A DNA stretch of 64,000 nt from Cyanophora paradoxa CCMP329 (Eukaryota; Plantae; Glaucophyta), in assembly GCA_004431415.1 (NCBI GenBank), contig QPMI01000579.1:157077-221076 (forward strand). The letters run 5' to 3'. A program made the position numbers and the translations under genes. Shown piece by piece: positions 1 to 38,262 of this stretch; positions within the stretch are counted from its first letter, which is position 1; the number at the start of each line of letters is the position of its first letter. The notes under the pieces are model-generated. The model was not told the DNA's origin. It saw nothing but the letters and a program-made list of their open reading frames with translations, and ran no database searches.

Positions 1-3000
1 CCGTGAACGCTTGGCGGAAGAGCAGGGTCGGTCCAGGATAGTAGACGTGAATAGACTTGTCGGCCGGGGTCACAACAAAACGAACGGTGAGCACGGCCCC
101 AGGGTGGTACAGGAGCCCGTAGTTCGCTCGCCGGACGAGCTCGGAAACATTCGCCCGCAGCGGAATGTTGCCCATTGAGAAACTCAACCCCTCGCCAGCA
201 GTGGCGCTGGAAGCACCTGAAATGAGCATGTCGAAGCTGATTGTCTGGAAGCGCGGGATCTTGGCCGGTGAAAAAACGAGCATTCCCGCCTGGTTCACGA
301 GAAGCGTGGTCAGCGACAGGTAGCCGCCGTCGTTCTCCGAGCGGGCGGCGTGTCCGGAGAGGGCGGCCCGGAAATCCTTGATGAAGGGCAGGGAAAAGTC
401 GGACTGGAAGACAACCGGCGACGGGAAGAAATCGAAGTCAAAGTCGGCAGCAACATCTCCCCAGTCCGATACGCTCCCGACAAGATTGCCGGTTAGCACA
501 ACCCGGGAAGAAGTCGCATCCATGATTACGCTTTGGCCCGCCCGTCTAGGAAGTAGTTGCGCCGTCGTGGGCTTGAGAGCCGATGGAGAAACGACGCTCG
601 GCGATACAGTGAGAACCGAAGACGAGTCCGGCAGGGAACGCGTGGTATTCAGCTCTCGATACGTGCAGCTTGCGCCAGCAGCCGATGCAAACGCAAGTTT
701 CATCGTGTTCGTGGCGTTTGTGGGTATAGGATCAAGGTCGATGATCTTGAAATCGTCGATCCAGTGCTCGCCCACATAGTACGTGTCGTAGAGCCCGAGG
801 CCTGTGTCGCCAATGACAGCAAAGTTCCAGTCGCTCGTTGGATTGAAGCCGGGTAGCTGGACACCGTTCATGATGATCTTGCCGTCCCGCCACATTTTCA
901 GCGACGCATAACGCTCGGTCCTGCCGTACCACGTTCTCCGAACGATGTCGCTCTGGACACGGATGCGGATGTTCATCCACTTGCCGGCAGCCGGCCGGAC
1001 TCCTCCCCAGGCAAAGCCGCGGTAGCGCTCGGCCGGGTAGTAAGCGTAAATGTAGTCCCAAATCGTCATCCAAGAGATGCTCAGGCCGTTACCAGCCGCG
1101 TTGAGATTCGCGAGCCACCACCTACGCGTGCTCAAATAGCGGTTGATGTTCGCACAGGGGGTGAGGGTCGAACCAGTTCCACGAGAATTTCATCTGAGCA
1201 TCGATGCTGGGTTCGAGCGAGATTCCGGGTCCGTCTGCAATTTCGATTTCAGCTTCAGCCTGTTCCAAGGAAGCGGGAAGAGGCTGTCTACCACTTACAT
1301 GCAAATACAACACCCTTGCCACGCCCGACAACGCGCATCTTGAACGAAACTAGCGGGAAACAAAGTTCGATTGCGAAAGCTGCGAAAATGGCGCGGCGAG
1401 TTGCAGACCTTCGAAAGAGCGTGGCTTCACCGGCGGGCTGACGACGAACCATCCCTGCTGCTTCTCCTTAAACTCCGTAAGGCGGAGCGATCCGTTGACG
1501 ACCTTTGCTGAGCCGAACATCGACGAGCGGTAGTAGCGGGAAAGCCACTCCACGCTCGGACTGCTCGTGTTGAAGTCGGCTTCGTACAAGACGCGAGTTG
1601 AGGAGATGCCGAGGGTGAAGTTGAAACTGGGAGGCGCATCGCTCGAGCGGTTCAGCGGGAGGATCTCGGAGACGAGGCCCCTGTAGAAGCCGCCTACGGT
1701 GATCTCCAGGGCGCGGCCCTCCCCGTTGGTGGGCACGTTGTCCAGCCGCGGCTCGAAGGAGCACATCATCGCCGACCGCGGCACGTCCATCGACGCCGCG
1801 GCCTGCAGCGAGATCCGGGAGGCGGACCAGCCGCGGAGCCCGCAAGTGAGGACGCTCGTCTCGTCCGCTTCGCAGGGAGTGAGCGGCAGAAGTACACAAT
1901 CGCAAAGAGGGAGACGCACCTCCCTGGCCGACAGACGTCGCCACAAAGGCTGTGTTGTTGTAGAGAACGGAGAAGGGCCCTTCGCGGCACGACGCTGCAG
2001 CCTTAATGTCCGTATTCAGGTAGCGGTCGCCGCTTTTGACGCTCATGTTCGAAAGCGCGACTCCACCGTACCACCACCAGGGCGCGAAAGCGGACCAAGA
2101 GAATGTCCAGTCGGAGCGCGGGCTCCAGTCCTTCAGTTCAGCCCAGAGGGCGTCGATGCCGGACACAGAGACGTAGAGCCGCGCTCCCGTCCGATCCGTC
2201 TCGTGCGGCATGACCGACACCGTCACTTTGGCGTCCCTCCAGCCGCGGTACGAGTACGCCCAGAAGCTCCAGTGGACATAGCCCCACCTCCACTGGTACC
2301 ACCGATCCCGCGGTCCCCGGTACGCCATCGCCACCCAGTAGCTGCAAACCGGCGGCATCGTTGATCGAACTCGAGCTTTTGAGCGTCGATCAAAATTACC
2401 TTCGGAACTGTATGAGAAGCTCGTAGGATCCGTCAATGGACCCTGCCCCCCACGACCACCAATCGGTCACCGGATCCATAGAGGAGCCGCGCGGGAGCCC
2501 ACTTCCATATCTGCGCCCGACCAGTGAATGCCAGCAGGGCCATAACCAAACAAATTGCAGCAAAGCGCAAGCGAACCTGAACGTAAAGCCATCGTACCAA
2601 CTTGAGCTTGTCACGGTCTGGGTCACAGTGAAATACGTGACCGCCCGTGGGGCCTCTACGATGAGCATGCCCGCTTGGCCAGAGAGCGCCTCCTCTGAGG
2701 TCTTCGGCAGGGTCGCAAGGTAGAGGTACCCATTTTCAATGCGGGCGGAGCCGGCCATGGATGCGCCAAACGGCACTGGATAGGAGCTGTTGAAGGCCGA
2801 CGCAAACACTTGGTTGCTGAGAGCGACCAGGAACTCGTACGTGCTCCCGAAGCCTCCGAAGGCTCTCACGTGGCCCACTAGCGAGCTGTTCATGCGGAAT
2901 GCGAGCGCGTCGGAGTCAATCACGACGGGAGCATTCGACGCGTCCCTGATCCTCAGAGTGCAAAGCGCGGTCTGCTCGGTGAACGCGCCGGGGTCGACAG

Positions 3001-6000
3001 GACTGCACGAGACTGAGGACTGACTTCTGTCTGGCGTGCCGGTAGGGACCGTGTAGTTGGCCAGCGTCGTTGCTGTGCGAGATTGCCCACTCCTGACCTC
3101 GATGCTGCCTTGCCCGATGTCTGCTGCATCGTATGAGTAGAAGGTGATATCGTCAATTGCGTGCTCCGTGGCGGGTACGCTCCGCGCGTAGTAGTAGAAA
3201 TAATACCACCTGCGCGGAGAAGGTCAGTCTGGTAGAACGCTATCGCTTCTTGATATATTCGGCAAAGGTGCAGACCACCACCTGCCGAATGATTAAGAAG
3301 GCTACTAATGACATCGATGGAAGCACATACCAGTAATAATGGTTTGCGCGGAAGCCTGTCGATGCGCCCCACAGTAGAATCGAGTCGGCAGGTGGCTGCA
3401 GGCAACAGCAATCGGATGAGCATGCCGAGGGCAAATAGAATTGGAAGGAAGCGCAAAGGGCGCACATTCCACCAGTAGAGGGGGTAGTTCTGCAAAATGG
3501 TGCGGTCGTCCAGCACGACGGTGATTGCGGCCGTCTCGCGGTAGAACGAGCCGTAGCGCCAGTACGGTCTGTACCAGATGTACGGCGTGACGGATATCGT
3601 GATCGTGTGCCACTTGGCGGGGGCGTTGGGCGGCTCGTAGGTCGAGTACCACGACCAGGCCCACTGCGGCCAACGGGGCCACTTTGCGTGCATGCGGTTG
3701 AAGACTCGCACGTAAGTCCAGCCATTAGCGCGGATCAGCACGCTCAAGCCGTCACCTGATTACGCAGGCTCGTTCTGAAAGCACTCTAATGAAAATGTTT
3801 GCAGAAAACCGGACGCACCGGCCGCGCTGAGAGGATGGTCCCACCACTGGTCCCAGATAAGCGGGTCGTTGGGCGTGGTGCCAACGGTCATGTTTGAGCC
3901 CTGCAAGGAGAACCCTCTCAGCTCGTTTTTGCGCGCAGCTAGCGAAAATGGTGCAAGCAGCGAGACGCACGTAGCTGAACGAGATGCCGTCGCCCTTGTC
4001 GGCCTTCAAGCGGTACCTGAAAGAAATAGTGAAGTACCTTGGGGAGCCCCCTGGGCGGACTGTGTACGTCCCAAGCGTGTTCGCGACCTCCGGCGTGAGC
4101 GCAAGGTACTTGCCAGTCCCGTTTATGCGTGCGGCTCCGCCTAGGGCGGAACGGTACTTCAAGCCGCGCAGAGTGGTTGCCGGATCCGCGCTGAAGTCTT
4201 CTTCAAACAGGACACGACTCGGCTTGGGTCGGATCGAGAACTTGAACGACCCATCACCGAGGGCCTGCAGATCGGACGTAACGCGACCCTGAAGGCTGCC
4301 GTTGATTCGCAGGAATAGCGTGCCGGGGTCGACGACGAGCGGGACCCCCATGTAGCGCGGCGTAAACGTGCAGTCCACTGACGAGTCGGCGGGAACCGCG
4401 CCCGTGCTGACGGACCACGGCGCCGTATGCGCGCACTGGAGCCCGCTGGTCGACGCATCGCCGTTCGTCACCACGACCGTCTTCGACGCCAGAAGCTGAG
4501 TGAAGGATCCGAATCCTGAGTACACTCCGATGGTGCCGCTGCCGACGGGCGCGTCCCAGTTGTCGTTGCTGCGGATGAGCAGGTCGTCCACGCCCCACTC
4601 GGTGCCGTACCAGAGGCTGTCCGCCTCCAGACTGAACCGCCAGGTCGGCTTCGGCTCCCACGTCCTGAATTCGGCCCAGATGCGCGTTGTGCCGTCCTGC
4701 TCGGCAGTAAGCAGCAACTTCGAATTCGGCACTGTGGAGAGAAATTTCCAGAGCGATCAAGGAATCAAGTGCACCTGCTTCACGTGCAGAGTTGTCTTGC
4801 CAGCGGGACCGTACGGGTGCGGTACGATGTGGATCTCGATGTTGGACCATCGGTCTGGCATGTACGAGAGCCAGCTTGAGCTGACATACATGTGGTACTT
4901 GTAGACTGGGTCTGCATAAAAGATACTTCAGCACACTGAATTGAGCTCGGAGATGGAAGTAGAAATTGCACACCGTACAGCCAAGCTATTACGTAACCGC
5001 TACAAGCGCAACAGACTAGTGTTAGAGCAACAAGACGAGACGCACGAGAAAACGGCGTCGGCACATGTGCACCATCCGAATCGAACGAGCAGCGACTCTG
5101 GCCCTTGAATGTAGTTCCCGCCGCCGTACCACCACTCGATGTTCTCGATGCCCTTGTTGGGGCTGGTGCCGGCGCCGTAACGGAAGCTCATCCCGTAGGA
5201 GCACCACCATGCCCACGAGGAGTCGGTCCGCATCTTCCAGGACGCCGAAAAGTGCCGCGGCGCCTTGGGAACCTATTTTACGAACGCGATCGGCGAGCGA
5301 ATTTTCGTGAGATGTGGGAAGCGGTGAACAGTCTTTGATAAATACCTGAAGATGGAAAATTCCTGCTGCATCGGTGGAAGAAGAGCGCGGGGTGAGGGCG
5401 AGGTATCCGTCGCGGATCAACGCCATCCCCACGAGCATTCCCATGCTCGACTTGGCGTAGTTCGAGTCGAAGTCTTCGAAGTATATTGTTCGCGTAGGAA
5501 TGAACGAGAAGACAAAGCTGGAGCCGAAGCCTGAAAGCAAAGTTTACGTCTATTTTTGACAACTTCATTGCCACGCTGCCAAGAGGCGCACCTCCAAAAG
5601 AGGTTGTGATGGCGTTAAGGGTTCCGTTTATGAAGACGTTGATCGAGTCGGCGTCAATTGGAATAGGATCAGCACCGCGTCGTGGCACGAACGTGCACGA
5701 GACCTCTGTGTCCGTCCCGGCCGCCAGGACGTATTGCGCGCAGTCAAGCGTACCGTTGTTGGGAGCTGCAACCGCGGACATGTCAGCTTCAGTTGCGAGC
5801 TCAAAAAAATCTTTCGAACTCTAAAATCGTGCGCCAGCAATCGAAACGCACCGAGGGGCGAGAACTGATAGCGAGCGAGAACGTTGACGGACGGATTCCC
5901 GCGGCTTATCGCGATCTGGCCGCCGCCGATCTCGTAGTCGTCGTACCTGCAAGCTCATGTCAAATGCAATTGCGAGCAGGTGCACACAGGTCTCGCTGCT

Positions 6001-9000
6001 GTGTACGCACGAAATGATCTCAACGTTGTCGAGTTCGTGGTAAGAGGGCTCGCTCCGCCACCACCAAGTGGGAACGCCAGCAGCAGCTGCAGCGGTCCAG
6101 ACGAACACGGACGAAGATGCGGGCTCCCAGTCGTAGATAGGCATGTACCAGCTTAGTAAATCATGAGAATTAGGTAAACGTTTAATCTCATGATCATTAT
6201 CCATACAATCAATTTGGAGGCTTACACTGCGGGGTAGCCGTCGACCGTGACTGTGAGGAGCGCGTCACGACGGGTCCGCCAGTACCAGCGTATGTTCGGC
6301 TGCACTTGAATGGAAACATTGTGCCAGACTGTTGCAGCGTCGCTGCGCCAATAGAAAGGCACCCAGCCCCAGCCGTACTGCGGCCGTGGAGTTGTAGGGC
6401 TGTATGGAGACTCCGAGTGCAGCGAGACGCGAATGTAGGAGTATCCCCTGGCTCGGAAGAGGATCGAGAGGCCAGCACCGGCCGACGTAAACCGGTGCTC
6501 CCAGAAGTTGTCCCACATGGCCCAGTGGTCGGGGCCCATGCCGACCGACATGTTCGACCCGTAATGGAACGCGAACCCGTCGCCCTTGCGGTAGTCCATC
6601 CGGAAGCGGAAGTTGGCAGCAAAGTAGCGAGGCGCGTGCGCAGTCTTCACCTGCGGTGCGCGTATTAGCTAAGTAGTTTGTTCGAAAATCGAAACATTTC
6701 GAACCGCATAGACGCCGTCCGCATCCGACACAGGCGGTGTGAGGACAAGGTACTGTCCAGTCGAATTTACGTATGCGGCGCCGGTCAGAGATGCACGAGA
6801 TTGGAGCCCCAGAGATTCAGTCGGCCTGGAGCCTTGAGCAGGAGTGCCGTCGAAGCTCTCATAAAACAGAGTGCGGCTTGGTTTGGTCTGCGCGGCGCAT
6901 TTTCTCTCGGTAAATCGTAGCGGACGCGGACGCTGAAAAGAAGCGGCTTACAAGAATCGTGAAAGCGAATTTCCCATCCTCAACAGGGGCGATGTCTGCG
7001 ATTACCGATCCACGTAAGCTTCCGCTCGCGTCGACGAAAAGCTCTGCCGTCTTCGTTGCAATCGGCTCTCCCCGCAGAAGCGGCGTAAACGTGCATCTCC
7101 ACTGGTTTGCAGAGGGTCCGGAGCCCTCAAAGGTAGACCAGGCCTGCAGTGGGAGATGCTTACTAAGCTGAAAAAGAAGCGATGTGCATCGCACAGAAAG
7201 ACGTGACAAGACGTGTGCGCACCCCCGGAACAGAGCAGTTCACGTAGGAGGTGTTGTCCGGAGCCATGATCTCGATGGCGGAGGACGCGAGGGTGACGTT
7301 GCCGTTGAGGAGGGCTGTGATGGCGCCCGCGCCCGAGTTCAGGAGGAGGCTGGAGGCCACGTCGCTGTAGCTTTCGATCGAGACGTCGTCGATCTGCACA
7401 TTCGAGTCGTAGTAGAGCGACTCGCCCCAGAAGCTGAACCGGTGGTTCGCGGTCACCATGAAGTTTGGGATGGTCTGCGAGAAGTACGTCACTCCGTCGA
7501 CCTGCAGGCGTGCGTGCGGCCGCTAAACGTTAGCCAGGCGAGACCAAGGAGCTCGAGGCATGAAAGGACGGCGCGCCTTCACAATCAGCCGCGTCCTCGT
7601 CGGCAGATACATGTCCGGCACGCAGTGGATTTGCACGCCTCGCCACGTGCCCTTTGGGAACGAGCTGTAGATGTACCCCGCGCCGATCCAGGACTTGCTG
7701 GGCGCGTAGACGAATATGTAGCCTCCCGAAGGCCAAAGGGCTATCTTGACCGAGAAGGAGGCGCCGGGGATGTTCATGACGCCCCAACCGGACTCCAACT
7801 GCATGACGCTCTCCACGTTGGAGCTGAGCGACACGGACGGGCCAAAGCTGACGCCGGCGCCCGCCCAGAAGTAGTGCGGGTAGATCGATCGGGCGACGCG
7901 CAGCTTGAAGTCAACCCTGAACGAGCGCGAAAGGCGCGGCGGGTCGACGACGAACAGACCGATTTTCCACGAGCCAGCACCGATTCGCGTGAGGGACAGC
8001 GAGCCATCCTCGACCTTCGCGAAATCGGAGAAGGCCGTGCGGTGGCTCGTGACGCCCTCGGGGCCGGAGAAGTCCTCCTCGAAAAGCTTGTGAGAGGGCC
8101 GGTACAGGAACTCGAAGCGGCGCCCGATGCCGCCGAACTCTGTGACGGTTCCGACGAGCGAGCCGGACAGGCCGATACTGCACGTTTGCCGCTCGTCAGT
8201 GCAGACATCAACAGGGCGTAAAAACAAACCGGAACGCACAAAATGGCATCTCCGCTGATGGCTTCGCCGCTTTCAAGCAGGAGCGAACAACGGACGTCCC
8301 GGAGTGCGTAGCTCATGAGCTGCGTCGCGTCGCACTCCATTTTCATGGCGGCTGAGAATTCCGAACAACGAATCACGCATTCGATTGAAAAACTGCGTAT
8401 CGAAACGATGAAGACGCACCGCCATCCGGTGCAATTGCGGCCGAGCCGCGCGGGAAGGGCGAATTTCGCGATCCGGTGAACGCATCGAGGCTAGTTGCGA
8501 CAGCGCTGGATGTGCTCGACCCAAGCGACTCGACCAGAATTGACCGCACGGCGAACAAGCCGAAATCCGGCGCGTCGCCGTTTGAGGCCCAAAGCAGGAA
8601 CTGGTACTTCGAGCTGGCACTCCACGTGCCGATGAACGTGTTGTCGTACAGGGGCTTGCCCCCGAAGGTAGCCGACAGGGTCGCGTAGCGCTCTTTCCTG
8701 TAGCTCGCGTACCACAGATAGGAGTCGACGGTAATCACGAGTTCGCGCCACGCCGGTGCAGGGCCGCGTCCCTGCGGATCGTACGCGTAGCCGAAGACGC
8801 GGTGATAGCCTCCTGCGCCGAGCGAGAGTTACTTCCATATCCTCTACTGCTCGCAGACGACGCGCTCGGGCGCTAACCGTAGTACATAGAGTTCGAGGCA
8901 AACGCGTAAACTGTTCGAAACTCGTTAGACGTTCTCAAAGACAATCCGTAAAAAGAAGTGAAAGTAAAGTACGGTAGGGGCCCTGGCGGTAGAGGAAAAT

Positions 9001-12000
9001 AGACAGTCCGTACAGTGCTCGCATGGGGACGCGATAATACCAGTAGGAGTCGACGTGGAAGTAAGGCTGCTCGGCGGGGCGATCGGACGGGACGTTGGAG
9101 CCGTACGAGATGCCCAGGCCCTGCCCGTCGCCAATGGACACTTTGAGCGACATGCGGAAGAACCCGGGGGTCGTCGATCCCGAAAACGTGAAGTGCCCAG
9201 CTTCCTGCGGCAGCGAGCAGAGGCAAAGCGAGCCGTTCTGCAGGGACGCCGACCCGCCGAGGACGCTTCGGTGCGAGTCGATGCGCCCGGAGGCGAAGTC
9301 CTGCTCGTACACGACGCGGCGGCCGGCGGGGCGGACGGTGGCGTGCCAGTCGTACGTGTTGGGGACGCGCTGGAAGGCGGACATGGAGCCGACGAGGGTG
9401 CCCGAGGCGACGAAGAAGAGCTTGGTGGCGTCGGCGTCCTCCGAGGGAATGTACGCGATCGAGGGCGAGAGAACGCAGGCCGAGTCGAAGGGCGCCTCGC
9501 CGAGCACCGCGGACCACGAGCGGCCGGAGCAGGCCATCGTCGTCGTCTCGTCCATGTCGCCGTACGCGAGCGGCCGCGAGATGATCGGGTCGTCGTTCAA
9601 CATAACCTGCACGTACCCCGAGGCGCTGTCGGGGGGCAGCGTGTCCAGCGAAGAGATAACCAAGTCGTCGACCGCAAACTCGCAGTCGGCCGAAAAGGTC
9701 TGCATGCGCATGATCATACTCTATTCTTTATCAAAATAACAGGAGAGATGCAAAGCGCACCTCGGCGAAAAGAGAGTAGACGTTAGGCGGGTTCATGGGC
9801 CAGTTCTTTATTGTGTGCACGAGAATGACCACGTTATTTATCAAGATTCGCAGCTCGGCATCCGTCGACGCGAACGTTGGCATCACCTGTATGTTCACGG
9901 TTCGCCACTTACCCAGCGTCCGCAGGTCCGCCCCCCGCGCCGTGATGTACGTGGGCCCCGCTCCGTACACGTAGACGGCCCAGTACGCGCTGCATGGCTC
10001 TCTCGGTCAGCTGGGGATAAGCACATTCACCTCGTTTGTTCTGCTTACAGCGAGAACCGAATGGTGAGCAAGGAAGCCGTAGAGTAGCCACTGTAGCCCC
10101 AGATCCAGCTGCGCCAAGCTTGCTCAGGCAACTGTTTTAAAGTACGGCCCGAAAATCTGCACAATCTCGTCCAGGCACCTGTATTGCAGAACGTCCGTTC
10201 CAGCTCCGAGCGGTATACCGCCCACCGCGAATGACAACCCATACCCTTCCCACGAGTCGGGGCTCGGAGTGGAGCGGTACCGGAACTGCGCTGAGAAGAA
10301 GCGCGCTCTGCTTGGCGTCTGCGCGGTAAAGATGCCGGCCTTGTTCGTCCCGAGTCCCCGAGGGGTGAGGATCAGCATGCCGTTCTCTATGCGCGCGTGA
10401 GTGCCGTAGGCCGCCCGATGGTTTTCGAACTGGTCGCTGTCGAAAGAAGCGGCAAAGATGGTTGTCCCAAACTTCAGGGAGAACGTCCACTCATTGCCCC
10501 AGCCTCCTATCTCGCCCATCCTACAGTATAGTTAGCATCGTAAAAGAGCTGTAATGGGATTTCGGGACATCGCGCCTTCCAACGAGCGTGTTGGTGAAGC
10601 GAAGGCGAAGAGCCGTTGAAGCGTCGGCGGAGATCGGGATCAGAGACTCGCGAGGGCAGCTCGCGGCTACGGGGGCTTTGGAACGCGCCGTCAGCGAGAC
10701 AAAACGTGCAGCGTGCAGCTTGGAGCTTCAACGGCGCACCTCGAATGCCCAGTACCTCAGCGTACAGAGCGAGGATAGATGTGGTCGATGCTGCCGCGTA
10801 GACTCGAACGGTAAGGAGATTGCGGGACATGCCCAGAGATGCCACTTCCAACGCGGAGAAAGCGAACGAAGAGAACACGCCAGCTCCAATTGACTGTGTG
10901 CAACAGTAAGAGTGCGTTCGCAAATGTTGAACCATGATAGAGTCGAACACGTGCACACCGTAGGCTTAGAGAGACGGCCAGAAGCGAAAATTGAAAGGCC
11001 GTTGACGAGGATGTCGTCGACTCGCTGCTGGGCGAGGACCGAAATGTTCACGTAGGCGGACGACTGCAGCAGGCCAGACAAGTCGATCGCAGTCGTGAAG
11101 TCTACGTTCCCTGCCTGTGAAGCCTGCTCGGAGATCGCAGTCAAAGGCAATGCATGATGACATGAAGGCAAAAGAAGGCAAAATGCTTCTGACGCACAAC
11201 ACCAGACGAAGATTGAGAGATGTAGTAAAGCCGGGGGTTGTACGATGTCAGTCTAGACGCCCTGGCGTGCACAGATTGGTTCACAAGCGCGTAAAGAAAT
11301 CTTTACACGAAACATGAAGACGAATGCAAACCCAGCCGAGTAGAGTGAGTCGATACCAACGAAAGCTGGCGCAGGTGATGCGCTGGCCCCCGTCCAGAGG
11401 CCCGTCCAGTTGAAAGCCGCATCCTTGTACTGACCGGAGCTTGTCGGTGTGCCGCCGTTGTTTGGATCAAGCGCCCAACCTACGTGCTGACGTCACGCGA
11501 ATCCAAGTTTGACAGCAAATGAGACTTCAAAATGCATCAATACCAGTTCCGTAGCGATTGACAACCTCTGCACGCGCCCCCAGCGCTCCGCTTAAAGGAT
11601 CGCACGCTGGGGAGCGCGAGAATGATTTGATGAGATGCACAGCACGCGGCAAGAAGTGCACGTTAGAAGATTTACCGGATAGCGTCAGATGACAGTCTAT
11701 CGTGAGATTCGAGATAGTCTTTGAGCGCGGAGTGCAGCTTATTGTCGATGAAGCATCCGGAACTGACCCGCGTCCGCGATCAGAGAGAGACAGAAACAAA
11801 GAAACAAGACGGTATTCTGCAGAAGCGCGTCGCACCGACGGGGATGCGCGGTAAGATTTTGCCGCCAACCTCGACGTACACAGCAAGCATGGAGGGATTC
11901 CAGCCACCGAAGTTCGAATTCCAAGTTCGGATTGTCAGCGTATTAGTTCCCATGGCGAGGTTGTCTACATCTTCCGCGGTGAACTCCAGCTTTGCCAGCG

Positions 12001-15000: not shown

Positions 15001-16184
15001 ATGGTCGATGCAGTGGGCGACGGCGCGACGATCGCAGGCGCGCAGGCGATCGTCGAGCTGTTCGATCGGACCACCGAGACGTAACGGAAGCCTAGTGGAA
15101 GGATGGCGGTTCCGAAACGCCCGCTCTGCAAAGCCACGTCAAAGAGGCCCGGAACGTTTTCGCGTCCATTCAGCTGAGCCGAGATTGCAGTTGAATTGAT
15201 GAATGTAATCTGAACAGAAAACGTGAATATTGTTGCTAGAAGCGATATCTAATTTGCAGACCTTGGAAATGAGCGTCCCGCCGATGTAAAGAGAAAGAGA
15301 AGTGTCATTCAAAAAGTTTGTGCTGTGCACGTGCTGTCAAAATCGGCTGGACGAGAGCAGTGGAACGTATTCGCATACCCGGTGATCGTGACAGTGATTG
15401 CATTGCCCCAATTCGTCCGCCTTGGACTCACGTTGTCAATTGTGGCCTCTGTGCGCTGCGATCAAAGGAGGCGCAGACCATTGATTGTGAGAACGTACTT
15501 GGGTTGACAATGTAGAGTGTGGGGCAGACTTCGTTGATCTCGCTTCCGAATATGAGACGTACAGCGTACTTTCCTGGCGTCAGGCTTCGCGGCGGAAACA
15601 CGCGGACGGCGCGGGAGCCCAGCCCGATGAACGTGATGTCGCTGCTCTCCGCCGCGGTCGAGTTGAAGAAGACCGAGCCGGCGTAGAGGTCCACGCCCTG
15701 TACTTGGATGAACCTGCCCCCGACGGGGCCGTCGAAAGGGGCGAGGCCAGTGAGGCGCGGCTCGCCGACTGTGATCTCGGTCGAAGCAATGGACGTGCCG
15801 CGGTAAGCAACCTTCAGCGCTCCAGCGCCAAGAGGGATGTGCCCTTTCAAAAAAGTTAGAATAAAAGAATTGACGCTATGTGGTTTGTGGATAAGCCGCA
15901 CAGTATTCTGTCGATTCTAATCTGAAGTCCGAAATGCCAACTTCGTCCGCATATCCATAAACAGCATTTGAACCAAAGAGGGCGAAGTTCCTGATCATGA
16001 TCGAAGGAAAATAAGGACACAGGCAGTGACAGTCAGAATGCATAACCACTCAAGCAAAATTCACCAGTCGGCAGCAGGTTGCCAGGAAGGCAGGGGTATT
16101 GAAGGGACCAGTACTCGGCTGCGCCACGTGACACGAAGGAGAGCGCCTGCATCCTTTCCTGAATCGGGCAAGATCTCAACCTGG

Positions 16185-16217
<33 letters not shown>

Positions 16218-25200: not shown

Positions 25201-28200
25201 AAGCCGCCGCACGAGTCGCGATGGATCGAGAACTTCACCACGCGCCATCCGCTCGCCGGAACTGGCACCTGGGCGCGGAGTCGAGGACACGATTACGCTC
25301 GAAGCCAATTCGCGAGGAAGGAGGCGGCGCACCGCTCCGTAGTGGTGGTTGTTGATGAGCGTCTGCTGCTTCCAAACGTACACGTACTTATTCGGCTCGT
25401 TGATGAAGAAATTGATCCCCACGTCGGAAGCGAAGAAGAGCGTGTGCGCCGAGCTCAGCGATCTCGATTGGAATATCTGATCGTTGACGTCCGCGAAATC
25501 CACAGGCACGTTCCCGTAAACGAACGCCATCGGCACGGTGGAAATCTTGAATGTGACGGTCGCTGCGTGAACGCTTCAGTTTCCAGGCGCCAGTCCAAGC
25601 CATGCATGTGCGAGATGCACCTATGAACGTGTCCGGCGAGCCTGCCTGCGGCCGGAACGTGTAGAAGCCGCGGCATGCCGACCCGGACGCGCCCCTCGGG
25701 CACAGCGTCAGGTTCTGGCCCGCCGCCACCGCCGAGCCCGCCATCGACTCCCCACGGGAGTACTGCCAAGGCCCGCCCCGCGAGAAGTTGCGCTCGAAGA
25801 CCAACCGAGGCTCCCCCAGCGACACGTTGAACGAGACGGTCCCCGCTCCGCCCGACCGAGGGAGAAGGGGCGACGGCACGCCCGCGAGCATACCGGCCGC
25901 CTGCACCGACATGAATGCAGGCGACCCAAGCGATGGGGCCCCCTCCAGGCGCAGCGTCGCGTTGCAAGAGAAGCTCGTTCCAGCCGCGGGGCCGGCCGGC
26001 CCCCAGGATGCGATGTCGAGGCCCGCGCCGCAGCTCAGCGACGACGTCGCATCGGCGCCTGTTAGAACGCGGAGCTGTGCATAAGCAACGATCGGCAAGC
26101 GCGCGGCGGACGCGCACCGCCGATGACGATGCGGTTGGATGAGACGGCCGCCGGGAGCCGCACAGTCAGGGTCCCGTTGCGCAGCACGGAGTCTCTCAGG
26201 CTCGCGTCGTACTCCTCGACCATCAGGTCGGTAATCAACGTCTCTTCCGGGTACGAAGCCACCGTGTCGGCGTAGAGCTGTCCCCAAGACACTCAGCGAG
26301 TCCAGTCGCACATGAGCCACTTCGAAGGTAGCGCGAACGCTCACCCGGAACGTCCAGCCAGGCGCGGGGTCCCAGGTGGTGCGGTCCGTGATCAGGACGT
26401 CCTCGAGCGTCGTCTCGCCATCAACCACGACGGACACGACGACGCTGCCCGCAGCCGCGCCGGGCCGGACGTGCACTGCCGCCGAGCGCCACACGCCTGC
26501 AGCCACAATGAGCATGCCAGCGTGGAAAAAACTCGAGCCACGATCAAGGCGGGTGTCCGCGGGCGCCCGCTATCGTACACGCATGCGCACCACCGGCAGC
26601 ACCGGACGCGATGCTGCTCGTCGCAGTTCCGCCTTGCGCGTGCCGCGTCGTCGGATGCCATATCGACAAATAGCCGTATTTATAGCCTGCAAGCGCGCGA
26701 TGATCATCATGGCATGAGTTGAAAACTAATCGAATCTCAACACAGGGCGGGTCGGCGAGATCGCCGTGAGTGCTTTCTGGCGTGTTCCCGCGCTTCTAAA
26801 TACGTAGCATTTCAAGTACAGGGCGCACCCACGTAAGTTGCGAAATGAACTGCGCAATTATGCACGTTGGTCGCAGCCATGGAACACATGATTATTGCAG
26901 CGGATCGAGACGGGTTCGCGGCCAGCTACAGCCTGTGCGCACCGGACAATCGATCGCCCTGCATGGCGAGACAGCCAAGAGCTCCGGTGCAGTACGGAGC
27001 GGACGACGCTGTCGGCCCGTTGAACGTGTCGTTGATACGCCGCGCTGTGCCGTACGCGAACGTGAACCCGGTCCCCCCGTCTGGTTGGCGGCCCGCGTCA
27101 GATTCAGCAGCGGCGCACGGCGCGAGTGCACACTCGTGAGGGAGTTGATGGACATGAAGCGAAAGCTCGCAGTGAAGAAGCGCGGCGGCGGCCCTGCCGG
27201 CTCGAAGACGAACATGCCCTCGCTCGGCGCGCCGCGCACGAGCCGAAGCGCGCCGTCTTCGGGCGACAGGGCGGCGGAACCCGTGATCGACCACCTGCGA
27301 GTTGAAGGAAGAGCTCAATAAGCTCAATGTGCAGGCTCTCGTATCTGCGACGAGCCCATCAGCACACACCGGTACGAGGTGGGAGGGCCCGCGGTGGTGT
27401 TGAAGCTCTCCTTGAAGACCACGAATCCGTAGGGGCCGCGCTCGAAGGCAACAGAGAAGTCGAAGCTCGGCGAGGCTGCTACACGAGCGAGGTCCTGCAC
27501 AACGCGTCCGCGGAGCCCTCCCGAGAGCTCCGCCGTGAACGGCAGCAGGACGGGATCGAAATGGATGCTGTTGCTCGCCAGCCGCGTCTCCAGCCGGCAG
27601 GTCGCCACAGCTGCCTCTCTGATGGCGGGGAGTGGAAGAACTGCAGGAGTGCACTGCAGCGTGCTCGAGGCGTCCGGAGGGCGCACAACCCAGAGCGGGT
27701 ACGGCGTGCTCTGCACTTGCGTTCCGGACGCGGCGTGGCTGTAGAACAGGGTCACGCTCCCGCTGGTGATGGATGCGGCCGCGGTGAAGTTGAACCGATA
27801 CTCGCTGATGATCTGGGACCCCAAGCCTGACGCGAACGGGACGAAGGCCCCAATGGAGCCCAGGCCCGCGGAAGAGAGGCTCGCATTGACGGTGCCGAGC
27901 GGAGCAAAGATCGGCGTCCCCTGCCGGGCCGGCCGGGCCGAGCACAAGACGCTTGCGTTCACCTGCACGGCAATCTTTGCGCAGTGCACGACGACCTCCG
28001 TAGGCAGGTCTGTCGGCGATTGCAGTGTGAGGTGGCTGTGCCCAACGAGCCCGACAAACAGGGGTATGCACCAGAAACGATGAAGCTCGTGGAGAGGGCC
28101 ACAGCTGCGCCGCGCATCATTGTGACCGTCACGCGCCCTGTCTGCGCGATCGACGGCACGACTGGCGCAAAGGTCGCATTTGAGTACGCCATCCCGAATT

Positions 28201-31200
28201 CGTCCCCGCTCGTGAAAACGACGTTCGCAACCAAGGAGCCCGCCTGCAGCCCCTCCGCCGGGATCGTCACCCTCGCCACCGCGTAGACATTTGCGGGAGT
28301 TACGTCGACAAATATCGGCCCGCCCGCCTTCTTCGCGGCGTATGTGCACACCACGGCTTCCGCAATCCTGGCCTGCTGCGGGCACAGCAGCTGCGACGTA
28401 ACTGTCGCGGGCAGCGGGGTTGCAGCATCATCCGGCGTGTCTGCACTCGCGGTTAGGCAGATCCTTTCAGATATGCAACGGTCCGATGGTCACGCGCGCT
28501 GTTCACTCACCAGGGTAAAGGAAGACGCCGATGGCAGCTCCGGCGGGCCAGCCCGCCACCCCGAACCGCAGGCTCGGGTAGTTCTCCGGCAAAGTGTAGT
28601 GCATGCCTGCGCATTGACCATCGACTTCCGGATCTCCAGGGATCGCGATCGTCTGCACGACCGCGTCAGCTCCCCGGCCCGTGAGAAACGCAGCAAGCAT
28701 TGCGCTCACCTGGTTCGCATTTGTCCTATTTATCAGGTAGACCGGAGGTGTTCCAGCAATCGTATGATGCTTCCAGGATGTGTGGATTGCGAACGGCGTG
28801 CCCCGCAGATCAAGGTTCAGGATGCCGTCGGTATCGCAAGGTCCACCCCACGCTGGATAGTAGGCGTTGGACCCGGTAACAGCGCTGACGAAATCCATGG
28901 CGTTGACAGCAAAAGTGGGTCCGAGAGCTGTTGCGGGGTAGTCAAATCGCAGTCCCCAGAAATAATACCGGTAGGTGCCGCTGTAGATGTTGGCATAGTT
29001 TGATACCCCATACGCTCCGCCCATTGGGAGAGCAAGGAAGTCGTTCGTCGAAAAATAAAAGAAGCGGTGTTGAACGTACTCGCCCGTCTCCTGCGCGACG
29101 GCACGATGGCGTGAGATAATCCAATGCAAAATCCATTGCCAGAAGCTCGAGGCAACGAGAGTACCGAGTTCCTGAAAGCGTACATGCGCGCAGTGCCTGC
29201 TCGGAGAAATCGTGAGCGAACGGACGCGGGCACGAATTCCGATGATATCCCCTTGACGTCTCACCCGTGACATTCACGAGAACAGAAGCTATTACGCCCA
29301 CGGAAGCAAATGAAGCGGTAAGCGGGGCTGTTCTCAGAGCATCCGCGATTGACGCCGGCGATCCGACGAACGTGTACGTGACCTCGAAAACGAAGCTCGA
29401 CCCCGAGGCCGCCATCAAAGAGCGATCAACGACCGCCGTCAGTTTCGTCGCCAACATGCCAGGGTGGCTGAGCGTGACGTTCGACGCGAGCACCGAGACG
29501 GGCTCCTCGCGCCACCGCGTGGTCAGGTTACACCTGATTGCACGGCCATCATCGTGAGCGACAAAAGCACGAATAACGACTCTGCAGACTGCAGACGTCA
29601 GCGCACCTCAGGGTTTCGCCGGTGGTCACTAAGAAGAAGTTCCGGCCGGTCCGTGGTGCGCACTGCGCAGGCGCACATGGTCATAGCCGAGCACGCGGAA
29701 TCGATCATCAGCCGCACGCGTGCGAGCGCAAAGTTCATAATATTAACACGGACCTGCATTATGCTTGTCGAATCCGGCTCGCCAAGAACGACGAGGGCGC
29801 GGGGCTGAACCAGAGTCCGCTCGACAGAGACGGTGCTCCCGCTCGAACTCGTAAGCACGAATGTGCCTCGCAGCACCAGGTCCCATTTGCTCTGCTCGCA
29901 AGACGCTCGTCTTAAAAACAGCAATTGGAATGCACTTGCTGCTGCCAGAGAGCGACTGCAGTTGCAGCTAAAATACGCACCGGCAAAAGCTCGCGTCCCG
30001 TCGCATTGAGAGGGAAAGAAAAGGAGTTGCTCGCTGTGGTGATAGGACCCGCCTGGAGCCGGACGATGCCAGTCGTGTTCGCCACAGATACATTGAAGAT
30101 GCCACTCGCGCTCCCTTCCAACATGGCCCCTGAGCCGACATGATTAGACAATTATCCTCAAGTGCAGGAGCTGGATGTTCCGTCATCATTGCACAACATT
30201 CGCACCTCGGACTGTCGCGATGAGAGCTGCTGGGAGGGAGACGTACGACAGGCGCGGGATTGAGAGCTCTGCCGACACCGTCCAGATTGAAATGGCCGCG
30301 CTTGTCACGACGGCAGCCGGGATGGCGTCCGGGTCGCTGAAAGCGGCTGCCACATCGCAGCTGGTCGGCGAGCCCGTGGCGTTGAGCGTGAATCGCAGCT
30401 CCGGGAGACCGCTCGTGCCATTCACAACGACGATGTGTCCAGCAGCAATCGATCCCGCCACGCAGGACGTAATGTGCACTGAGAGCAGGGCCGGAGGCAC
30501 GAAAGTACGGATTCCGCTCTTCGAAGGCACGATGGTGCAATCGACAGTGGAGTTGACCGCAATCAGGTCACTCCCGCAGGAAGCATTGACAGCGTCCGGC
30601 ACATCTGCACGAAAGGTCGGCGAGCGGCATATAAAAATACCAACAGCGAAGTATCGCGATCCAGACCCGAGACAGCGATGACCGACGTGTTCGCGATGGG
30701 TGAGCCTCGATAAAGGGCTACAAGCCGGCCGCTCCCCAACGGCGCGAAGACTGGTGCGGACCCGCGTGCGCGCGGTAAATGAGCAAGAAATCCAGATATA
30801 CAAAGGCTGCAGCGCCAGCTTAAGCGCACCCGGCTCTGTTGCCGAAATCTGCACGTCGGAAATCCCCGCCTCGGTTGCGTACCCGTACCCGGCGTTGGAT
30901 CCAAAAAAGGCGAACGCCCTGTGCGGCGCGGTGAGTAGGCATTGAAATTGAGTGAATGGCGGCAACGGAGTTCAACGGAGGTTTCACCAGTCAGGCCGAG
31001 GGCTCCACCGCGGGATCGAAATGCTCGGGACCACAACGCGTCCCCGCCACGTCACCCTCAGTGATGCTCCCGCGGGATTTGCTCTATCGGGAGCGACCTC
31101 GACCTGACGTCGAATTGATAAGGACCTGCACGACCCATCTCCGCGCAGGAGACCCACACCTCCATGGGGTACATCGGCTCATTCGTCAGCGCGTTGTCCG

Positions 31201-34200
31201 TTGCAGAGGTGTAGAGACCGGCGGACTGGTAGTGGACGATGTTGCCGAGGTCATCGTATACATGGACGTAATGCTGTCCCGCTCGCGCCCACAGCGTGTA
31301 GAGGCGGACCTAGACGCCGACATCAATGTCGTATCTCACAACGCCCGCACCGCACACAGCCGATAATGGTTCGAACGAAGCCCATCATAACGCACCGTGA
31401 GCCCTGCATTTCGCGAGCGAATGTGCCCTTTTCCGTCGTTGGCGAGAACCGAATCCGGCGCCGTCACGTTCCATCCTAGAGGAAACGCGCCGATGGAGAA
31501 CGCGAATCCATCAGACGAGTATCCGACGGAGAAGCTCGGCCCGGTGCCGGTCTTGCCGCAGCACAGCTTGTACCGCCACGAGGCCCTGAAGAACCGCGGC
31601 ACGCGTGCTGGCGCAAACACCCACGCCCCGCCTGCCCGCGGTAACGCCGGCACAAGCTGAAGGTACGGGCCGGTGGCTGCCGAGACCACGCGCGCAGTGC
31701 CCGTGAGCGAGGATCCTGACCGGGCGAAGCTCCACGCGCTCGTGAAGTTCTCGGCAAAGACCAGCGAGGTCGGCGCAAACGCGAAGCTGAAGCGCGACGC
31801 GAAGCCGCCGAAAGCGGAGACGGACCCGACGAGCGTCCCATCGGCGATGACGCGCAGGTCGCCCGCGTCGACGGCCACTGGAGCACCGCTCCGGCGCAGC
31901 TCGAGGGTGCAGTTGTTCGCAGAGATGTCACTGCTGGAGGCCAGCAGCCGTCTGAGGGGACAGTGCAGTCGCGATGACAAGTCCGGCGCTGCGCAGTCGG
32001 AGCACACGCGCGCGCTTTCGTCAGCCGCAAGGTGCGCTTTCGAAACCCAAGCGCGCATCAGGCACCTCCATCGAGCCTTACGGCGGCAATGGTAGAGCCG
32101 TTGCCGGCGGATCCGTCGGTCAGCGCCACGACGGCGGCTCCGGCAGCCGCGGGCGCTGCAGGGTGCCGGTCCTGGCTCTCGACTCGGACTGGCAACGGAA
32201 GAATAAAAAGAATCAGATGCACGCAAACTCCACCACACAATCGCGAGAATTTAACACAACAGAAGAGCGCGAACCAGACTGGACTACCACCTCGTTCGTG
32301 GCTGCCGTAGACGTTCCCGGATCAGACAGCAGAAGGAAGCCCCTGCGAGATGTCGAGCAGGCCGACGCGTACGCCAGTCCACGTCAGATGGAGGACGAGC
32401 GATTGGCAAACTCCTTTGAAGGACCGCACCAGTTTGGCGACGGCGCCCAGCCAGTGAAACGTTGATTGATTGCCCCGTCGGCTCCAGCGTAGTCGTCTGG
32501 AGTGATGCTAACCCCATCTGCTCGCGCAAGAAATCGATTTCTCGACAGAAATCAGAACGATCGAGCAGCGATGGCGAACCCATCTCAATCGAATACACAG
32601 CATCCGCATCAGCATTTCTATGCAAAAAAGATCGTCAGCTTTCGAATATTCGTCTACTTGAAGCACAAAAAGCAAGCCGCCGCACGAGTCGCGATGGATC
32701 GAGAACTTCACCACGCGCCATCCGCTCGCCGGAACTGGCACCTGGGCGCGGAGTCGAGGACACGATTACGCTCGAAGCCAATTCGCGAGGAAGGAGGCGG
32801 CGCAGCGCACCGCTCCGTAGTGGTGGTTGTTGATGAGCGTCTGCTGCTTCCAAACGTACACGTACTTATTCGGCTCGTTGATGAAGAAATTGATCCCCAC
32901 GTCGGAGGCGAAGAAGAGCGTGTGCGCCGAGCTCAGCGATCTCGATTGGAATATCTGATCGTTGACGTCCGCGAAATCCACAGGCACGTTCCCGTAAACG
33001 AACGCCATCGGCACGGTGGAAATCTTGAATGTGACGGTCGCTGCGTGAACGCTTCAGTTTCCAGGCGCTAGTCCAAGCCATGCATGTGCGAGATGCACCT
33101 ATGAACGTGTCCGGCGAGCCTGCCTGCGGCCGGAACGTGTAGAAGCCGCGGCACGCCGACCCGGACGCGCCCCTCGGGCACAGCGTCAGGTTCTGGCCCG
33201 CCGCCACCGCCGAGCCCGTCATCGACTCCCCACGGGAGTACTGCCAAGGCCCGCCCCGCGAGAAGTTGCGCTCGAAGACCAGCCGCGGCTCCCCCAGCGA
33301 CACGTTGAACGAGACCGTCCCCGCGCCGCCTGACTGAGGGCGAAGGGGCGACGGCACGCCCGCGAGCATGCCGGCCGCCTGCACCGACATGAACGCCGGC
33401 GACCCGAGCGATGGGGCCCCCTCCAGGCGCATCGTCGCGTTGCAAGAGAAGCTCGTTCCAGCCGCGGGGCCGGCCGGCCCCCAGGATGCGATGTCGAGGC
33501 CCGCGCCGCAGCTCAGCGACGACGTCGCATCGGCGCCTGTTGGAGCGCGGAGCTGTGCATAAGCAACGATCGGCAAGCGCGCGGCGGGCGCGCACCGCCG
33601 ACGACGATGCGGTTGGATGAGACGGCCGCCGGGAGCCGCACAGTCAGGGTCCCGTTGCGCAGCACGGAGTCTCTCAGGCTCGCGTCGTACTCCTCGACGA
33701 TCATGTCGGTAATCAACGTCTCTTCGGGGTACGATGCCACCGTGTCGGCGTAAAGCTGTCCCCGCGGCACTCAGCAAATTCGACCAAACGAGAGCCACTG
33801 TACATGCCAGGCCTAGGGAGCGGAAACGCAAGCGCTCACCCGGAACGTCCAGCCTGGCGCGGGGTCCCAGGTGGTGCGGTCCGTGATCAGGACGTCCTCG
33901 AGCGTCGTCTCGCCATCGACCGCGACGGACACGACGACGCTGCCCGCAGCCGCGCCGGGCCGGACGTGCACTGCCGCGGAGCGCCACACGCCTGCAGCTA
34001 CAGTGAGCATGCCGGCATCGTAGACCTCGAGCCACGACCAAGGCGAGTGACCGCCCGCTATCGCACACGCATGCGCACCACCCGCAGCACCGGACGCGAT
34101 GCTGCTCGTCGCAGTTCCGCCTTGCGCGTACCGCGTCGTCGGATGCCATATCGACAAATAGCCGTATTTATAGCCTGCAAGCGCGCGATGATCAGTTGGA

Positions 34201-35256
34201 GAATATTCAAAATTCACACAGAACGCGTCGGCGTGTCGGCTTATAATAGACAATTGCAATTAGGCATACCGAAGTAGGTCGCGAAATGAACTGCGCAATC
34301 AGGGACGTCGACGTTGGTCGCAGCCATGGAACGCAGCGTTATTGCAGCAGATCAAGACGGATTTGCGGCCAGCTACAGCGCGTGCGCACCGGACAATCGA
34401 TCGCCCTGCATGGCGAGACAGCCAAGAGCTCCGGTGCAGTACGGAGCGGACGACGCTGTCGGCCCGTTGAACGTGTCGTTGATACGCCGCGCTGTGCCGT
34501 ACGCGAACGTGAACCCGGTCCCCCCGTCTGGTTGGCGGCCCGCGTCAGATTCAGCAGCGGCGCACGGCGCGAGTGCACACTCGTGAGGGAGTTGATGGAC
34601 TTGAAGCGGAAGCTCGCAGTGAAGAAGCGCGGCGGCGGCCCTGCCGGCTCGAAGACGAACATGCCCTCGCTCGGCGCGCCGCGCACGAGCCGAAGCGCGC
34701 CGTCTTCGGGCGACAGGGCGGCAGAACCCGTGATCGACCACCTGCGGATTGAAGGAAAAGCTCAGCAATCAGGCCCTCATCGCGTCTGTACCGCGCCCGC
34801 GCTCGTTTCACATACCGGTGCGAGGTGGGAGGGCCCGCGGTGGTGTTGAAGCTCTCTTTGAAGACCACGAATCCGTAGGGGCCGCGCTCAAATATCACAG
34901 AAAAGTTCGTCGATGTAGTCGCCTGCAAAGAGGGCGTGGGGAGATTCGCGATCCTGCCACGAAGGTCCCCGGAAAAAGCGAAAGTGATATTTGAGAAGCT
35001 GGCTGCTTGGTTTCCGGCACGTAGCTGGCAGTGGGTTTGTGACCCCACGAGCTGTCTAAGCAGTGGAAGTGTGGCAGGAAAGCAACTTAATTCAGCTTGT
35101 CCCGACACTCGGTGCGCTGAAAAAACTGCGCAATAATGTTTTGGTGCACTCGAACACTAACGATCGCGAGCGCAAGCCGCAAAAGTTTCCGCGCGCACCC
35201 AGGACCAGGATTATTGAAAGTTGAAGAATGCTGATCTGTCCATGGCCAGCTGGCAT
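1..35256 (-). CDS. Giant multi-exon secreted/surface protein: ~20 tandem Ig-like + L-type (legume/ConA-like) lectin modules, with IPT/TIG, jelly-roll and GON-like domains; 3' end lies beyond position 1
   Basis: In the segments I spliced by hand, minus-strand ORF fragments join in frame across short GT...AG introns (e.g. 3210-3275, 3282-3330, 16181-16268, 19019-19112, 20532-20600, 35126-35198). Not every junction was checked. Putative start ATG at 35256 gives MPAGHGQISILQLSIILVL|VFSAHRVSG-QAELSC (signal-peptide-like). Recurrent module: PDxSSxLxC...CT(F/L)xPR..GxP...G(T/S)LxGxV..F...FxFxF, then (V/L)FxE(D/N)F...GxA....GYLxLT....G....PR(F/Y)F..SF...GxGxSFSYG...W..VxIxV...VxVDG...WxP...WxF...IDD. 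Lectin modules start near 34.9, 33.3, 31.8, 27.4, 25.8, 24.3, 19.95, 18.3, 16.85, 14.7, 13.5, 10.5, 9.3, 8.1, 6.9, 5.5, 4.2, 2.8, 1.6 and 0.4 kb. Confidence 0.85.
10800..12575 (-). other. Two galactose-binding-like jelly-roll domains separated by an Ig-like domain
   Basis: Two related segments: YSTTIDLTG...VQLQFLADDLVDDISVNGVSIF...GTNTLTIRTWN...NPSMLAV (11860-12575) and FTTAIDLSG...VNISVLAQQRVDDILVNGLSIF (10800-11480). Confidence 0.5.
15500..15775 (-). other. IPT/TIG (Ig-like plexin/transcription factor) domain within the giant gene
   Basis: PRLTGLAPFDGPVGGRFIQVQGVDL...VRVFPP...PGKYAVRLIFG matches the P-x-I-x-x-I-x-P-x-x-G-P-x-x-G-x-x-I-x-I-x-G pattern of IPT/TIG. Confidence 0.7.
16186..16217 (+). 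repeat. G32 homopolymer inside an intron
   Basis: 32 consecutive G within the minus-strand intron 16181-16268. Confidence 0.9.
16629..24087. repeat. Intragenic tandem segmental duplication, copy A (~7.46 kb)
   Basis: Near-identical to 24088-31554; offsets of 7459-7486 from matching ORFs (e.g. 19367/26845, 20873/28344). Confidence 0.95.
21050..21600 (-). other. GON-like domain (copy 1) within the giant gene
   Basis: DFLALP...NYANIYSG...YFWGLRFD...AMDFVSA...AWGGPCD..GILNLDLRGTPFAI..W resembles, from memory, the ADAMTS9/GON-1 GON pattern EYxTL...NFS..Y...FxK(I/V)R(I/L)D...DxxFA...AGDC...GxFxI(N/D)LxGT...W. Confidence 0.55.
24088..31554. repeat. Intragenic tandem segmental duplication, copy B (7.47 kb)
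   Basis: Matches copy A, and copy C at offset ~7467 (ORFs 23869/31336, 24989/32462). Confidence 0.95.
28520..29070 (-). other. GON-like domain (copy 2) within the giant gene
   Basis: Near-identical duplicate of 21050-21600 (ORF 28503-29273). Confidence 0.55.
31555..34889. repeat. Intragenic tandem duplication, partial copy C (3.3 kb)
   Basis: Matches 24088-27443 up to gaatccgtaggggccgcgctc, then unique N-terminal sequence follows. Confidence 0.9.
35099..35256 (-). other. Predicted first exon(s) and signal peptide of the giant lectin gene
   Basis: ATG at 35256; intron 35126-35198 (GTGCGC...TGCGCAG, phase 1) joins a hydrophobic core LQLSIILVLVFSA to HRVSG/QAELSC, in frame with ORF 34551-35108. 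Confidence 0.65.
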
Positions 35257-35419
35257 ACGCAAAGGCGGCGGACGTATTGTCCCAAGTCGCCTTTGTTTCA
35301 TGCACATGCATATGGGCGTTGCAATCGGGCACTGGTCATGAAAAGCCGTCACATGGCCCTGGAGTTCGCTTCCGCCCGCGATTTCTGACATGGATGCATC
35401 CTGCGATTTTTTAATATGA

Positions 35420-37969: not shown

Positions 37970-38134
37970 TATGCTGCTAACCTGCCCTATACAGTACCCC
38001 CGTTGTTTTATTAATGTCTAACTTAGAAGCAATTTTTTTAAACATAGAATGTCTAAGTGTATCGGCTTGATCAATATAATCTTTTAATTCTTCAGGCTCT
38101 ATAAAGTTCTTTCGAGTAAGTTATCTACTTTTTC

Positions 38135-38262
38135 AGGCGAAGCCTCTTTCAGGCGAAGCCTCTTTCAGGCGAAGCCTCTTTCAGGCGAAGCCTCTTTCAG
38201 GCGAAGCCTCTTTCAGGCGAAGCCTCTTTCAGGCGAAGCCTCTTTCAGGCGAAGCCTCTTTC
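38135..38262 (+). repeat. 8 x 16-bp minisatellite (aggcgaagcctctttc), the amplified 5' subterminal hairpin of the Helentron-type element
   Basis: Exactly 128 bp = 8 perfect units. Each holds AGGC-GAA-GCCT, whose reverse complement (aggcttcgcc) lies near every 3' end of the array units. Confidence 0.9.

Follow-up and report, generated by a model that had tools for sequence, protein, structure and literature searches.

What kind of gene fills the first 35 kb of a 64-kb stretch of DNA from the glaucophyte alga Cyanophora paradoxa CCMP329, and what might its product do? The stretch (hereafter the window) comprises 64,000 nucleotides, positions 157,077 to 221,076 on the forward strand of contig QPMI01000579.1 (assembly GCA_004431415.1), and an initial interpretation of its letters alone—the sequence-only reading—had proposed a giant secreted protein strung together from L-type lectin modules. 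Our analysis points to one very long, intron-rich gene on the minus strand, extending past the low window edge, with 20 modules of predicted L-type fold, none of which keeps the aspartate that holds calcium in well-known members of the family. To our knowledge, L-type lectin domains in eukaryotes occur as single domains—in cargo receptors of the endoplasmic reticulum (ER) and Golgi, plant lectins, and lectin receptor kinases. Among the listed matches from a search of 1.84 billion protein representatives, none came close to 20 such domains covalently joined in a polypeptide of ~9,000 amino acids (aa); the most was three copies.

A long spliced frame on the minus strand

The window is rich in GC (0.53–0.65) and contains many long, spurious open reading frames. 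As a test for true coding frames, we compared all open frames of at least 35 aa with one another. Distant self-similarity (25–40% identity), of the kind left by old duplication at the protein level, joined only frames on the minus strand, which argues that this is the coding strand; plus-strand coding was rejected, as the plus-strand matches all derive from recent duplication of the DNA. An iterated profile seeded from one minus-strand frame recovered approximately 25 matching frames on that strand, extending from 34.7 kb to position 2. We trained a splice-aware dynamic-programming parser on these frames, with iterated splice-site matrices. Its best parse was a single chain without stops that starts in the 5′ region, reaches position 17, and comprises 124 exons and 25,305 coding bases. 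The parsed introns were mostly 50–120 nucleotides long and of the GT...AG form, with donors that were mainly GTGCGC or GTGCGT and CAG acceptors in 108 of 123.

The predicted start is an ATG at position 35256, followed by a short hydrophobic stretch resembling a signal peptide and an intron of 196 nucleotides, after which the first well-supported exon begins at 35002. Five parsed exons further upstream (36429–35438) are weak and probably spurious; the region from 35300 to 36600 contains low-complexity repeats of the "tagctatagc" type and palindromic runs, with no convincing exon. Downstream of the start, the largest non-coding gap between exons does not exceed 270 nucleotides, and ~8,360 aa are encoded before the frame, still open, meets the window edge. 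Together with 630 aa of a public gene model that continues past that edge (P0001, see below), the total length is at least ~9,000 aa. The parse contains local errors: one 36-nucleotide "intron" (27619–27654, and again at 20141–20176) is really coding, as it is in frame, free of stops, holds a conserved spacer cysteine, and occurs in two repeat copies, and modules 6 and 9 are mis-parsed in their C-terminal halves, with the exons themselves intact in the DNA.

The locus includes a 7.48-kb tandem repeat present 2.4 times (Table 1), each unit of which contains three modules, four to five extra spacers, and one domain of ~190 aa. Between the two full copies, divergence was 1.09% in predicted exons versus 2.56% in predicted introns, and the ratio of nonsynonymous to synonymous differences per site (pN/pS) within exons was 0.185. 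The lower divergence of exons, along with this ratio, indicates that the exon calls are largely correct and that both copies have been under purifying selection. These figures support a functional gene. We rejected a pseudogene or an assembly artifact as the cause of the triplication, given that the copies differ by ~1.5%, preferentially in introns and at synonymous positions.

Modules, spacers, and other domains

Domain counts and alignments were made on the joined spliced model; searches and folding used exon references or the public fragments P0001–P0004. An iterated profile identified 20 modules of 215–255 aa, 19 of them whole and the twentieth cut by the window edge. Outside the recent duplication, these modules are strongly divergent, with a median pairwise identity of 23% (range 15–40%), and 14–15 distinct types remain once repeat copies are discounted. 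A second profile detected a spacer of ~100 aa, marked by two conserved cysteines, in 22 significant copies. Every module has one in front of it, and the repeat unit holds four or five more within an 830-aa stretch. Sequons of the form N-x-S/T number 104, versus 53 expected from composition.

These results bear out much of the sequence-only reading, which had described a spliced frame of at least 35 kb still open at the window edge (with an end coordinate identical to the ATG found here), a protein of some 9,000 or more aa, approximately 20 L-type lectin modules in that one frame, and marked divergence among modules outside the recent duplication. Its description of the spacers as immunoglobulin-like (Ig-like) finds weak support: a portion of the spacer profile matches He_PIG/Big_9 repeats of protein P0009, and the spacers are beta-rich, yet of low confidence, in both AlphaFold models, whereas the best match of the spacer profile in the PDB reached only E = 0.6.

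Three further kinds of domain were recognized. Pfam TIG (PF01833) matches the tail of P0001 beyond the window (E = 7.6e-14), and a profile seeded from this domain finds one clear copy within the window and four in the tail, which also completes module 20; window exons searched by themselves had no match in Pfam. Neither the aromatic-rich ~190-aa domain of the repeat unit nor the two ~150-aa repeats between modules M11 and M12 matched anything in Pfam; for the former, the ESM Atlas likewise offered nothing usable.

Fold and relatives of the modules

Standard identifiers do not recognize the modules. Pfam gave no match for the raw long open frames, none up to E = 10 for the ten largest exons of the window, and no lectin match up to E = 1 for the spliced public fragments P0001–P0004; a word-based protein search with a 368-aa exon also returned no match, as expected from the length filter of that search. 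We therefore turn to profile methods, beginning with a large HMMER search of the 1.84 billion representatives using A3, an exon-derived alignment of the spacer and the N-terminal half of the module. Below the fragments of the gene itself, matches fell into two classes, spacer-only and module-matching. Among the latter, Pfam labels the matched region as an L-type lectin in 55 (31 PF18483, 21 PF03388, and 11 PF00139). With a profile of eight complete modules from P0001 and P0002, the match spans the whole domain in many targets, and hhalign of eight whole modules against 14 full-length outside domains gave a probability of 99.7% (E = 5e-27, 190 columns). A mixed alignment, A5, matched 75 PDB sequences at E ≤ 1e-3, and all 60 of those listed are L-type lectins (best, ERGIC-53, E = 1.8e-12), with the profile dominated by outside sequences. 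Taken alone, the profile of the module N-terminal half matched PDB entries only weakly (Emp47p, E = 0.12; a legume lectin, E = 0.53), and P0002 as a single sequence matched none.

Structural modeling agreed with the profile homology. An AlphaFold2 model of P0002 (918 aa, three modules), built with alignment A5, had a mean predicted local distance difference test (pLDDT) score of 55, with modules at residues 40–230 and 337–550 reaching 85–95; a separate AlphaFold model from 11 sequences, covering the spacer and three-quarters of a module, was discarded (pLDDT 46). Foldseek matched the P0002 model to PDB structures of ERGIC-53, VIP36, Emp46/47p, an Entamoeba legume-lectin-like domain, and legume lectins (E of ~1e-7 to 1e-6). 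In VIA-align, all of the top 50 matches were L-type lectins (Z = 15.2–16.9, 160–195 residues aligned), with root-mean-square deviations of 2.4–3.8 Å except for one full-length ERGIC-53 row at 15.7 Å. Profile and model together support an L-type (legume-lectin/ConA-like) fold for the modules, predicted as a two-sheet beta-sandwich, in agreement with the domain type assigned in the sequence-only reading, which had named a structure prediction lacking such a ConA-like sandwich as grounds for refutation.

The closest structural matches are ERGIC-53/LMAN1, VIP36, and Emp46p/Emp47p (PF03388; Z = 15.5–16.9 over 160–186 residues), which share with the modules the order of strands and several motifs—G-x-A...L-x-L-T at the start, a D-G-x-S-F loop, and T-G...H-x-I-D at the end. 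Proteins of this type have a single lectin domain on a coiled-coil stalk, act between ER and Golgi, and bind mannose via a calcium site, whereas the giant protein has 20 domains, lacks the calcium-site aspartate, and is not detected by Pfam. Legume lectins and arcelins (PF00139) share the fold as well (arcelin-1, Z = 16.0; pea lectin, 15.9; soybean agglutinin, 15.7), and the modules resemble arcelins in keeping the fold and losing the metal site; legume lectins differ in being single-domain seed proteins of ~230–250 aa that form oligomers and are not known as covalent arrays. Nearest in sequence are bacterial PF18483 proteins (E = 5e-14 and weaker), such as P0010, a PA14-domain protein of Candidatus Hydrogenedens, and metagenomic giant surface proteins, in which homology to the modules extends over the full domain and the lectin domain is accompanied by Ig-like stalk domains. 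These bacterial genes are intronless, however, and carry one to three copies among the matches listed. The staphylococcal adhesins Aap and SasG also carry a lectin head of the L-type kind.

We built a tree from 15 distinct modules and 14 outside domains, omitting five near-identical repeat copies. The window modules grouped apart from all others with a support of 0.978, indicating that the array grew by duplication within this lineage. The closest outside domains came from a Candidatus Hydrogenedens genome, metagenomes, and the protist Rigifila ramosa, and outside proteins carried at most three copies of the domain among the matches listed. The Rigifila sequence (P0030, a transcript encoding 2,537 aa) is a large protein of a distant protist with a full-length match to the divergent lectin-fold module described here.

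The spacer has a different distribution. All spacer-only matches that were looked up are Cyanophora paradoxa gene models (EukProt), and six giant proteins of this alga—P0122, P0011, P0005, P0007, P0006, and P0017—share it at E of ~1e-16 to 1e-4, in up to seven copies, together with IPT/TIG or PKD-like domains. None of the six matches the L-type module profile, and Pfam scans of three of them showed no L-type lectin; these relatives share the spacer and not the module. The suggestion of an undescribed family in the sequence-only reading is half borne out: the module is very divergent, but it forms a branch of a known superfamily, and its spacer recurs elsewhere in Cyanophora. P0122, P0011, and P0005 correspond to g5275, g5279, and g5278, neighboring models on one other Cyanophora contig with five to seven spacers each, and the two scanned, P0122 and P0011, have PKD-like or TIG domains besides; these three may be parts of another fragmented giant gene.

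Sugar- and metal-binding residues

Do the modules bind sugar as classical lectins do? We aligned them with the outside domains and mapped the position of the calcium-site aspartate via ERGIC-53. This residue, in the F-D-T/S-x-x-N strand, is replaced in all 20 modules (by A, F, Y, W, Q, V, S, R, M, or a gap), and no conserved asparagine follows it. The F-D-T aspartate is also missing in some of the nearest bacterial relatives. The sugar-binding aspartate of the A-D-G loop is kept in seven of the 20 (M03, M06, M09, M11, M15, M17, and M18) and is replaced or missing in 13. As far as we know, arcelins and alpha-amylase inhibitors, members of the L-type family without a calcium site, do not bind sugars. 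By analogy with these proteins, classical calcium-dependent sugar binding by the modules would be unlikely.

These observations bear most directly on the possibility that the protein is a true multivalent lectin, each module binding a different glycan and the filament as a whole reading the sugars that coat prey, partners, or bacteria. The fold is in its favor, the low identity among modules would suit differing specificities, and the retained A-D-G aspartates are in keeping with it; nevertheless, given the uniform loss of the aspartate that holds calcium in ERGIC-53 and legume lectins, and the behavior of the calcium-free family members, we regard this as unlikely, and the "multivalent glycan-reading" role offered by the sequence-only reading is not supported by the residues found.

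Public gene models at the locus

The top four matches of the HMMER search, P0001–P0004 (E = 2e-215 to 6e-17), are fragments of the giant gene that are 92–99% identical to our model. The longest, P0001 (2,265 aa), corresponds to modeled residues 6807–8435 at 98.8% identity and then continues past the window, where its tail adds four IPT/TIG domains; a hydrophobic anchor was not found in this tail. P0001 and P0003 begin inside lectin modules, P0002 begins at the last strand of a spacer, and none of these three has a signal-like start. No public gene model was recovered by profile search for modules M10 and M11 (window positions 12500–14700). Because their starts fall within domains, the public fragments look like truncation artifacts, and the public protein set appears to cover the locus incompletely and in pieces.

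An alternative, a cluster of several shorter paralogs in tandem, would accord with the public annotation, in which four separate models map to the locus, and a splice-aware parser can always bypass stops, so that a continuous path is no proof of a single gene. On the other hand, besides the mid-domain starts, the non-coding gaps remain short throughout, a signal-like N-terminus is seen only at 35256, and the rhythm of module and spacer runs unbroken across the boundaries of the public models. A gene cluster is a rather improbable account, and we infer that the locus is one very long, intron-rich gene read as a single transcript.

The locus also corrects the record for glaucophytes: its modules are too divergent for standard identifiers, and the public gene set breaks up its coding sequence. 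Only LysM and ricin-B domains were reported for Cyanophora paradoxa in a survey of plant lectin families (PMC6362431), a result that is consistent with the modules escaping such identifiers. Our literature search found no description of a lectin-fold array of this kind.

A candidate coat or adhesion filament

The interpretation that we favor, and hold to be somewhat probable, is that the locus encodes one giant secreted product whose modules are non-canonical, calcium-independent binding or packing units of a surface coat or adhesion filament. A single long gene would give rise to a polypeptide that enters the secretory pathway, and the hydrophobic N-terminus, paired spacer cysteines, and excess of sequons fit a protein of this pathway. 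Once outside the cell, it would form an extended filament resembling beads on a string, in which 20 beta-sandwich modules of L-type fold would each be seated on a disulfide-bonded spacer, with IPT/TIG domains midway along the chain and at its C-terminus. Repeated internal duplication would have enlarged the array, and purifying selection would have maintained it. Without the calcium site, which sugar binding by L-type lectins requires, the modules would most likely bind or pack in a calcium-independent manner, more like arcelins than classical lectins. We infer that the protein lies outside the cell and serves in adhesion or as a coat. If it does lie at the cell surface, it would be a candidate component of the adhesion or coat machinery, of which little is known, in an alga that has no wall; the modules also offer a natural series of lectin folds without the classical site.

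Several points weigh against this interpretation. The gene model is approximate, with weak splice signals at ~25 of the 123 predicted introns and a poorly modeled stretch at 10.5–12.6 kb, and in the public annotation at least four separate models cover the locus. The signal-like stretch at 35256 was judged by eye, and the 3′ end of the gene, the site of any membrane or glycosylphosphatidylinositol (GPI) anchor, lies outside the window. The structural model is confident for only two of the 20 modules, with the third module of P0002 and all spacers below a pLDDT of 50, and the loss of canonical residues is compatible with sugar binding at another site.

A more specialized possibility, to which we assign a fairly low likelihood, is a lineage-specific recognition device, in which each of the 14–15 module types would have become adapted, through a non-canonical site, to a surface ligand of its own (for example bacteria, a mating partner, or the substrate), as part of a set of Cyanophora-only giant stalk proteins with exchangeable heads. 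If this were true, a single-celled alga would have built a combinatorial binding surface from a fold that occurs singly elsewhere in eukaryotes. Lastly, a purely structural coat or matrix protein, with lectin-fold modules as rigid beads that provide length and bulk without a specific ligand, would suit the loss of canonical binding residues, the conserved framework with variable loops, and the heavy glycosylation suggested by sequon enrichment, but purifying selection (pN/pS 0.19) fits a binding role equally and does not separate the two, and we consider this account very unlikely. The calcium-independent coat or adhesion filament remains the interpretation that we prefer.

Feature coordinates and neighboring DNA

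Coordinates of the gene and its parts are collected in Table 1, in which the region between M11 and M12 is the least reliable part of the model.

Table 1. Predicted features of the giant gene, in window coordinates
Feature	Position	Strand	Basis and remarks
Giant gene	1–35256	minus	ATG at 35256; ~120 exons; 3′ part beyond low window edge; stop-free spliced parse and mapping of P0001–P0004
Exon 1	35199–35256	minus	Met and hydrophobic signal-peptide-like stretch of ~15 residues, then 196-nucleotide intron; read by eye
7.48-kb tandem repeat, 2.4 copies	17130–34889	minus	blastn, 97.5% identity
Repeat copies	17130–24618; 24619–32085; partial 32086–34889	minus	blastn
Module M01	33681–34868	minus	Iterated profile; near-copies M04 26203–27422, M07 18725–19944
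Module M02	32291–33282	minus	Iterated profile; near-copies M05 24681–25804, M08 17192–18326
Module M03	30837–31764	minus	Near-copy M06 23359–24297; older copy M09 ~15879–16838, 64% identical
Modules M10, M11	13947–14698; 12507–13511 (within 12507–14698)	minus	Iterated profile
Modules M12, M13, M14	9640–10462; 8541–9315; 7361–8089 (within 7361–10462)	minus	Correspond to P0002; M12 and M13 modeled with high confidence
Modules M15, M16, M17	5937–6872; 4559–5489; 3125–4213 (within 1–6872)	minus	Iterated profile
Modules M18, M19, M20	2020–2812; 728–1592; 1–415, cut by edge (within 1–6872)	minus	Iterated profile
Two-cysteine spacer, ~100 aa (example)	4217–4546	minus	Alignment A3
Stalk stretch of repeat unit (spacers and ~190-aa domain)	27423–30836; copy 19945–23440	minus	Spacer profile
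Aromatic-rich domain, ~190 aa	28427–29328; copy 20956–21857	minus	Inside repeat unit
IPT/TIG-like domains, one clear (15096–15440) and one weak	15096–15763	minus	TIG-seeded profile, E = 2e-23 for clear copy
Two repeats of ~150 aa each, between M11 and M12	10496–12461	minus	Weak splice signals

Beyond the 5′ end of the gene, positions 38200–60200 are occupied by a composite satellite of ~22 kb, built of ~149-nucleotide units with higher-order periods of 296–450 nucleotides and blocks of 4.2–5.9 kb. The plus strand of the satellite shows a strongly negative GC skew, and its open frames look non-coding. A second repeat gene at 38–60 kb was considered and rejected, as this is the composite 149-nucleotide satellite and its open frames have no family matches. 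At the edge of the satellite (38131–38262) lies a perfect tandem array of a 16-nucleotide unit in 8.2 copies.

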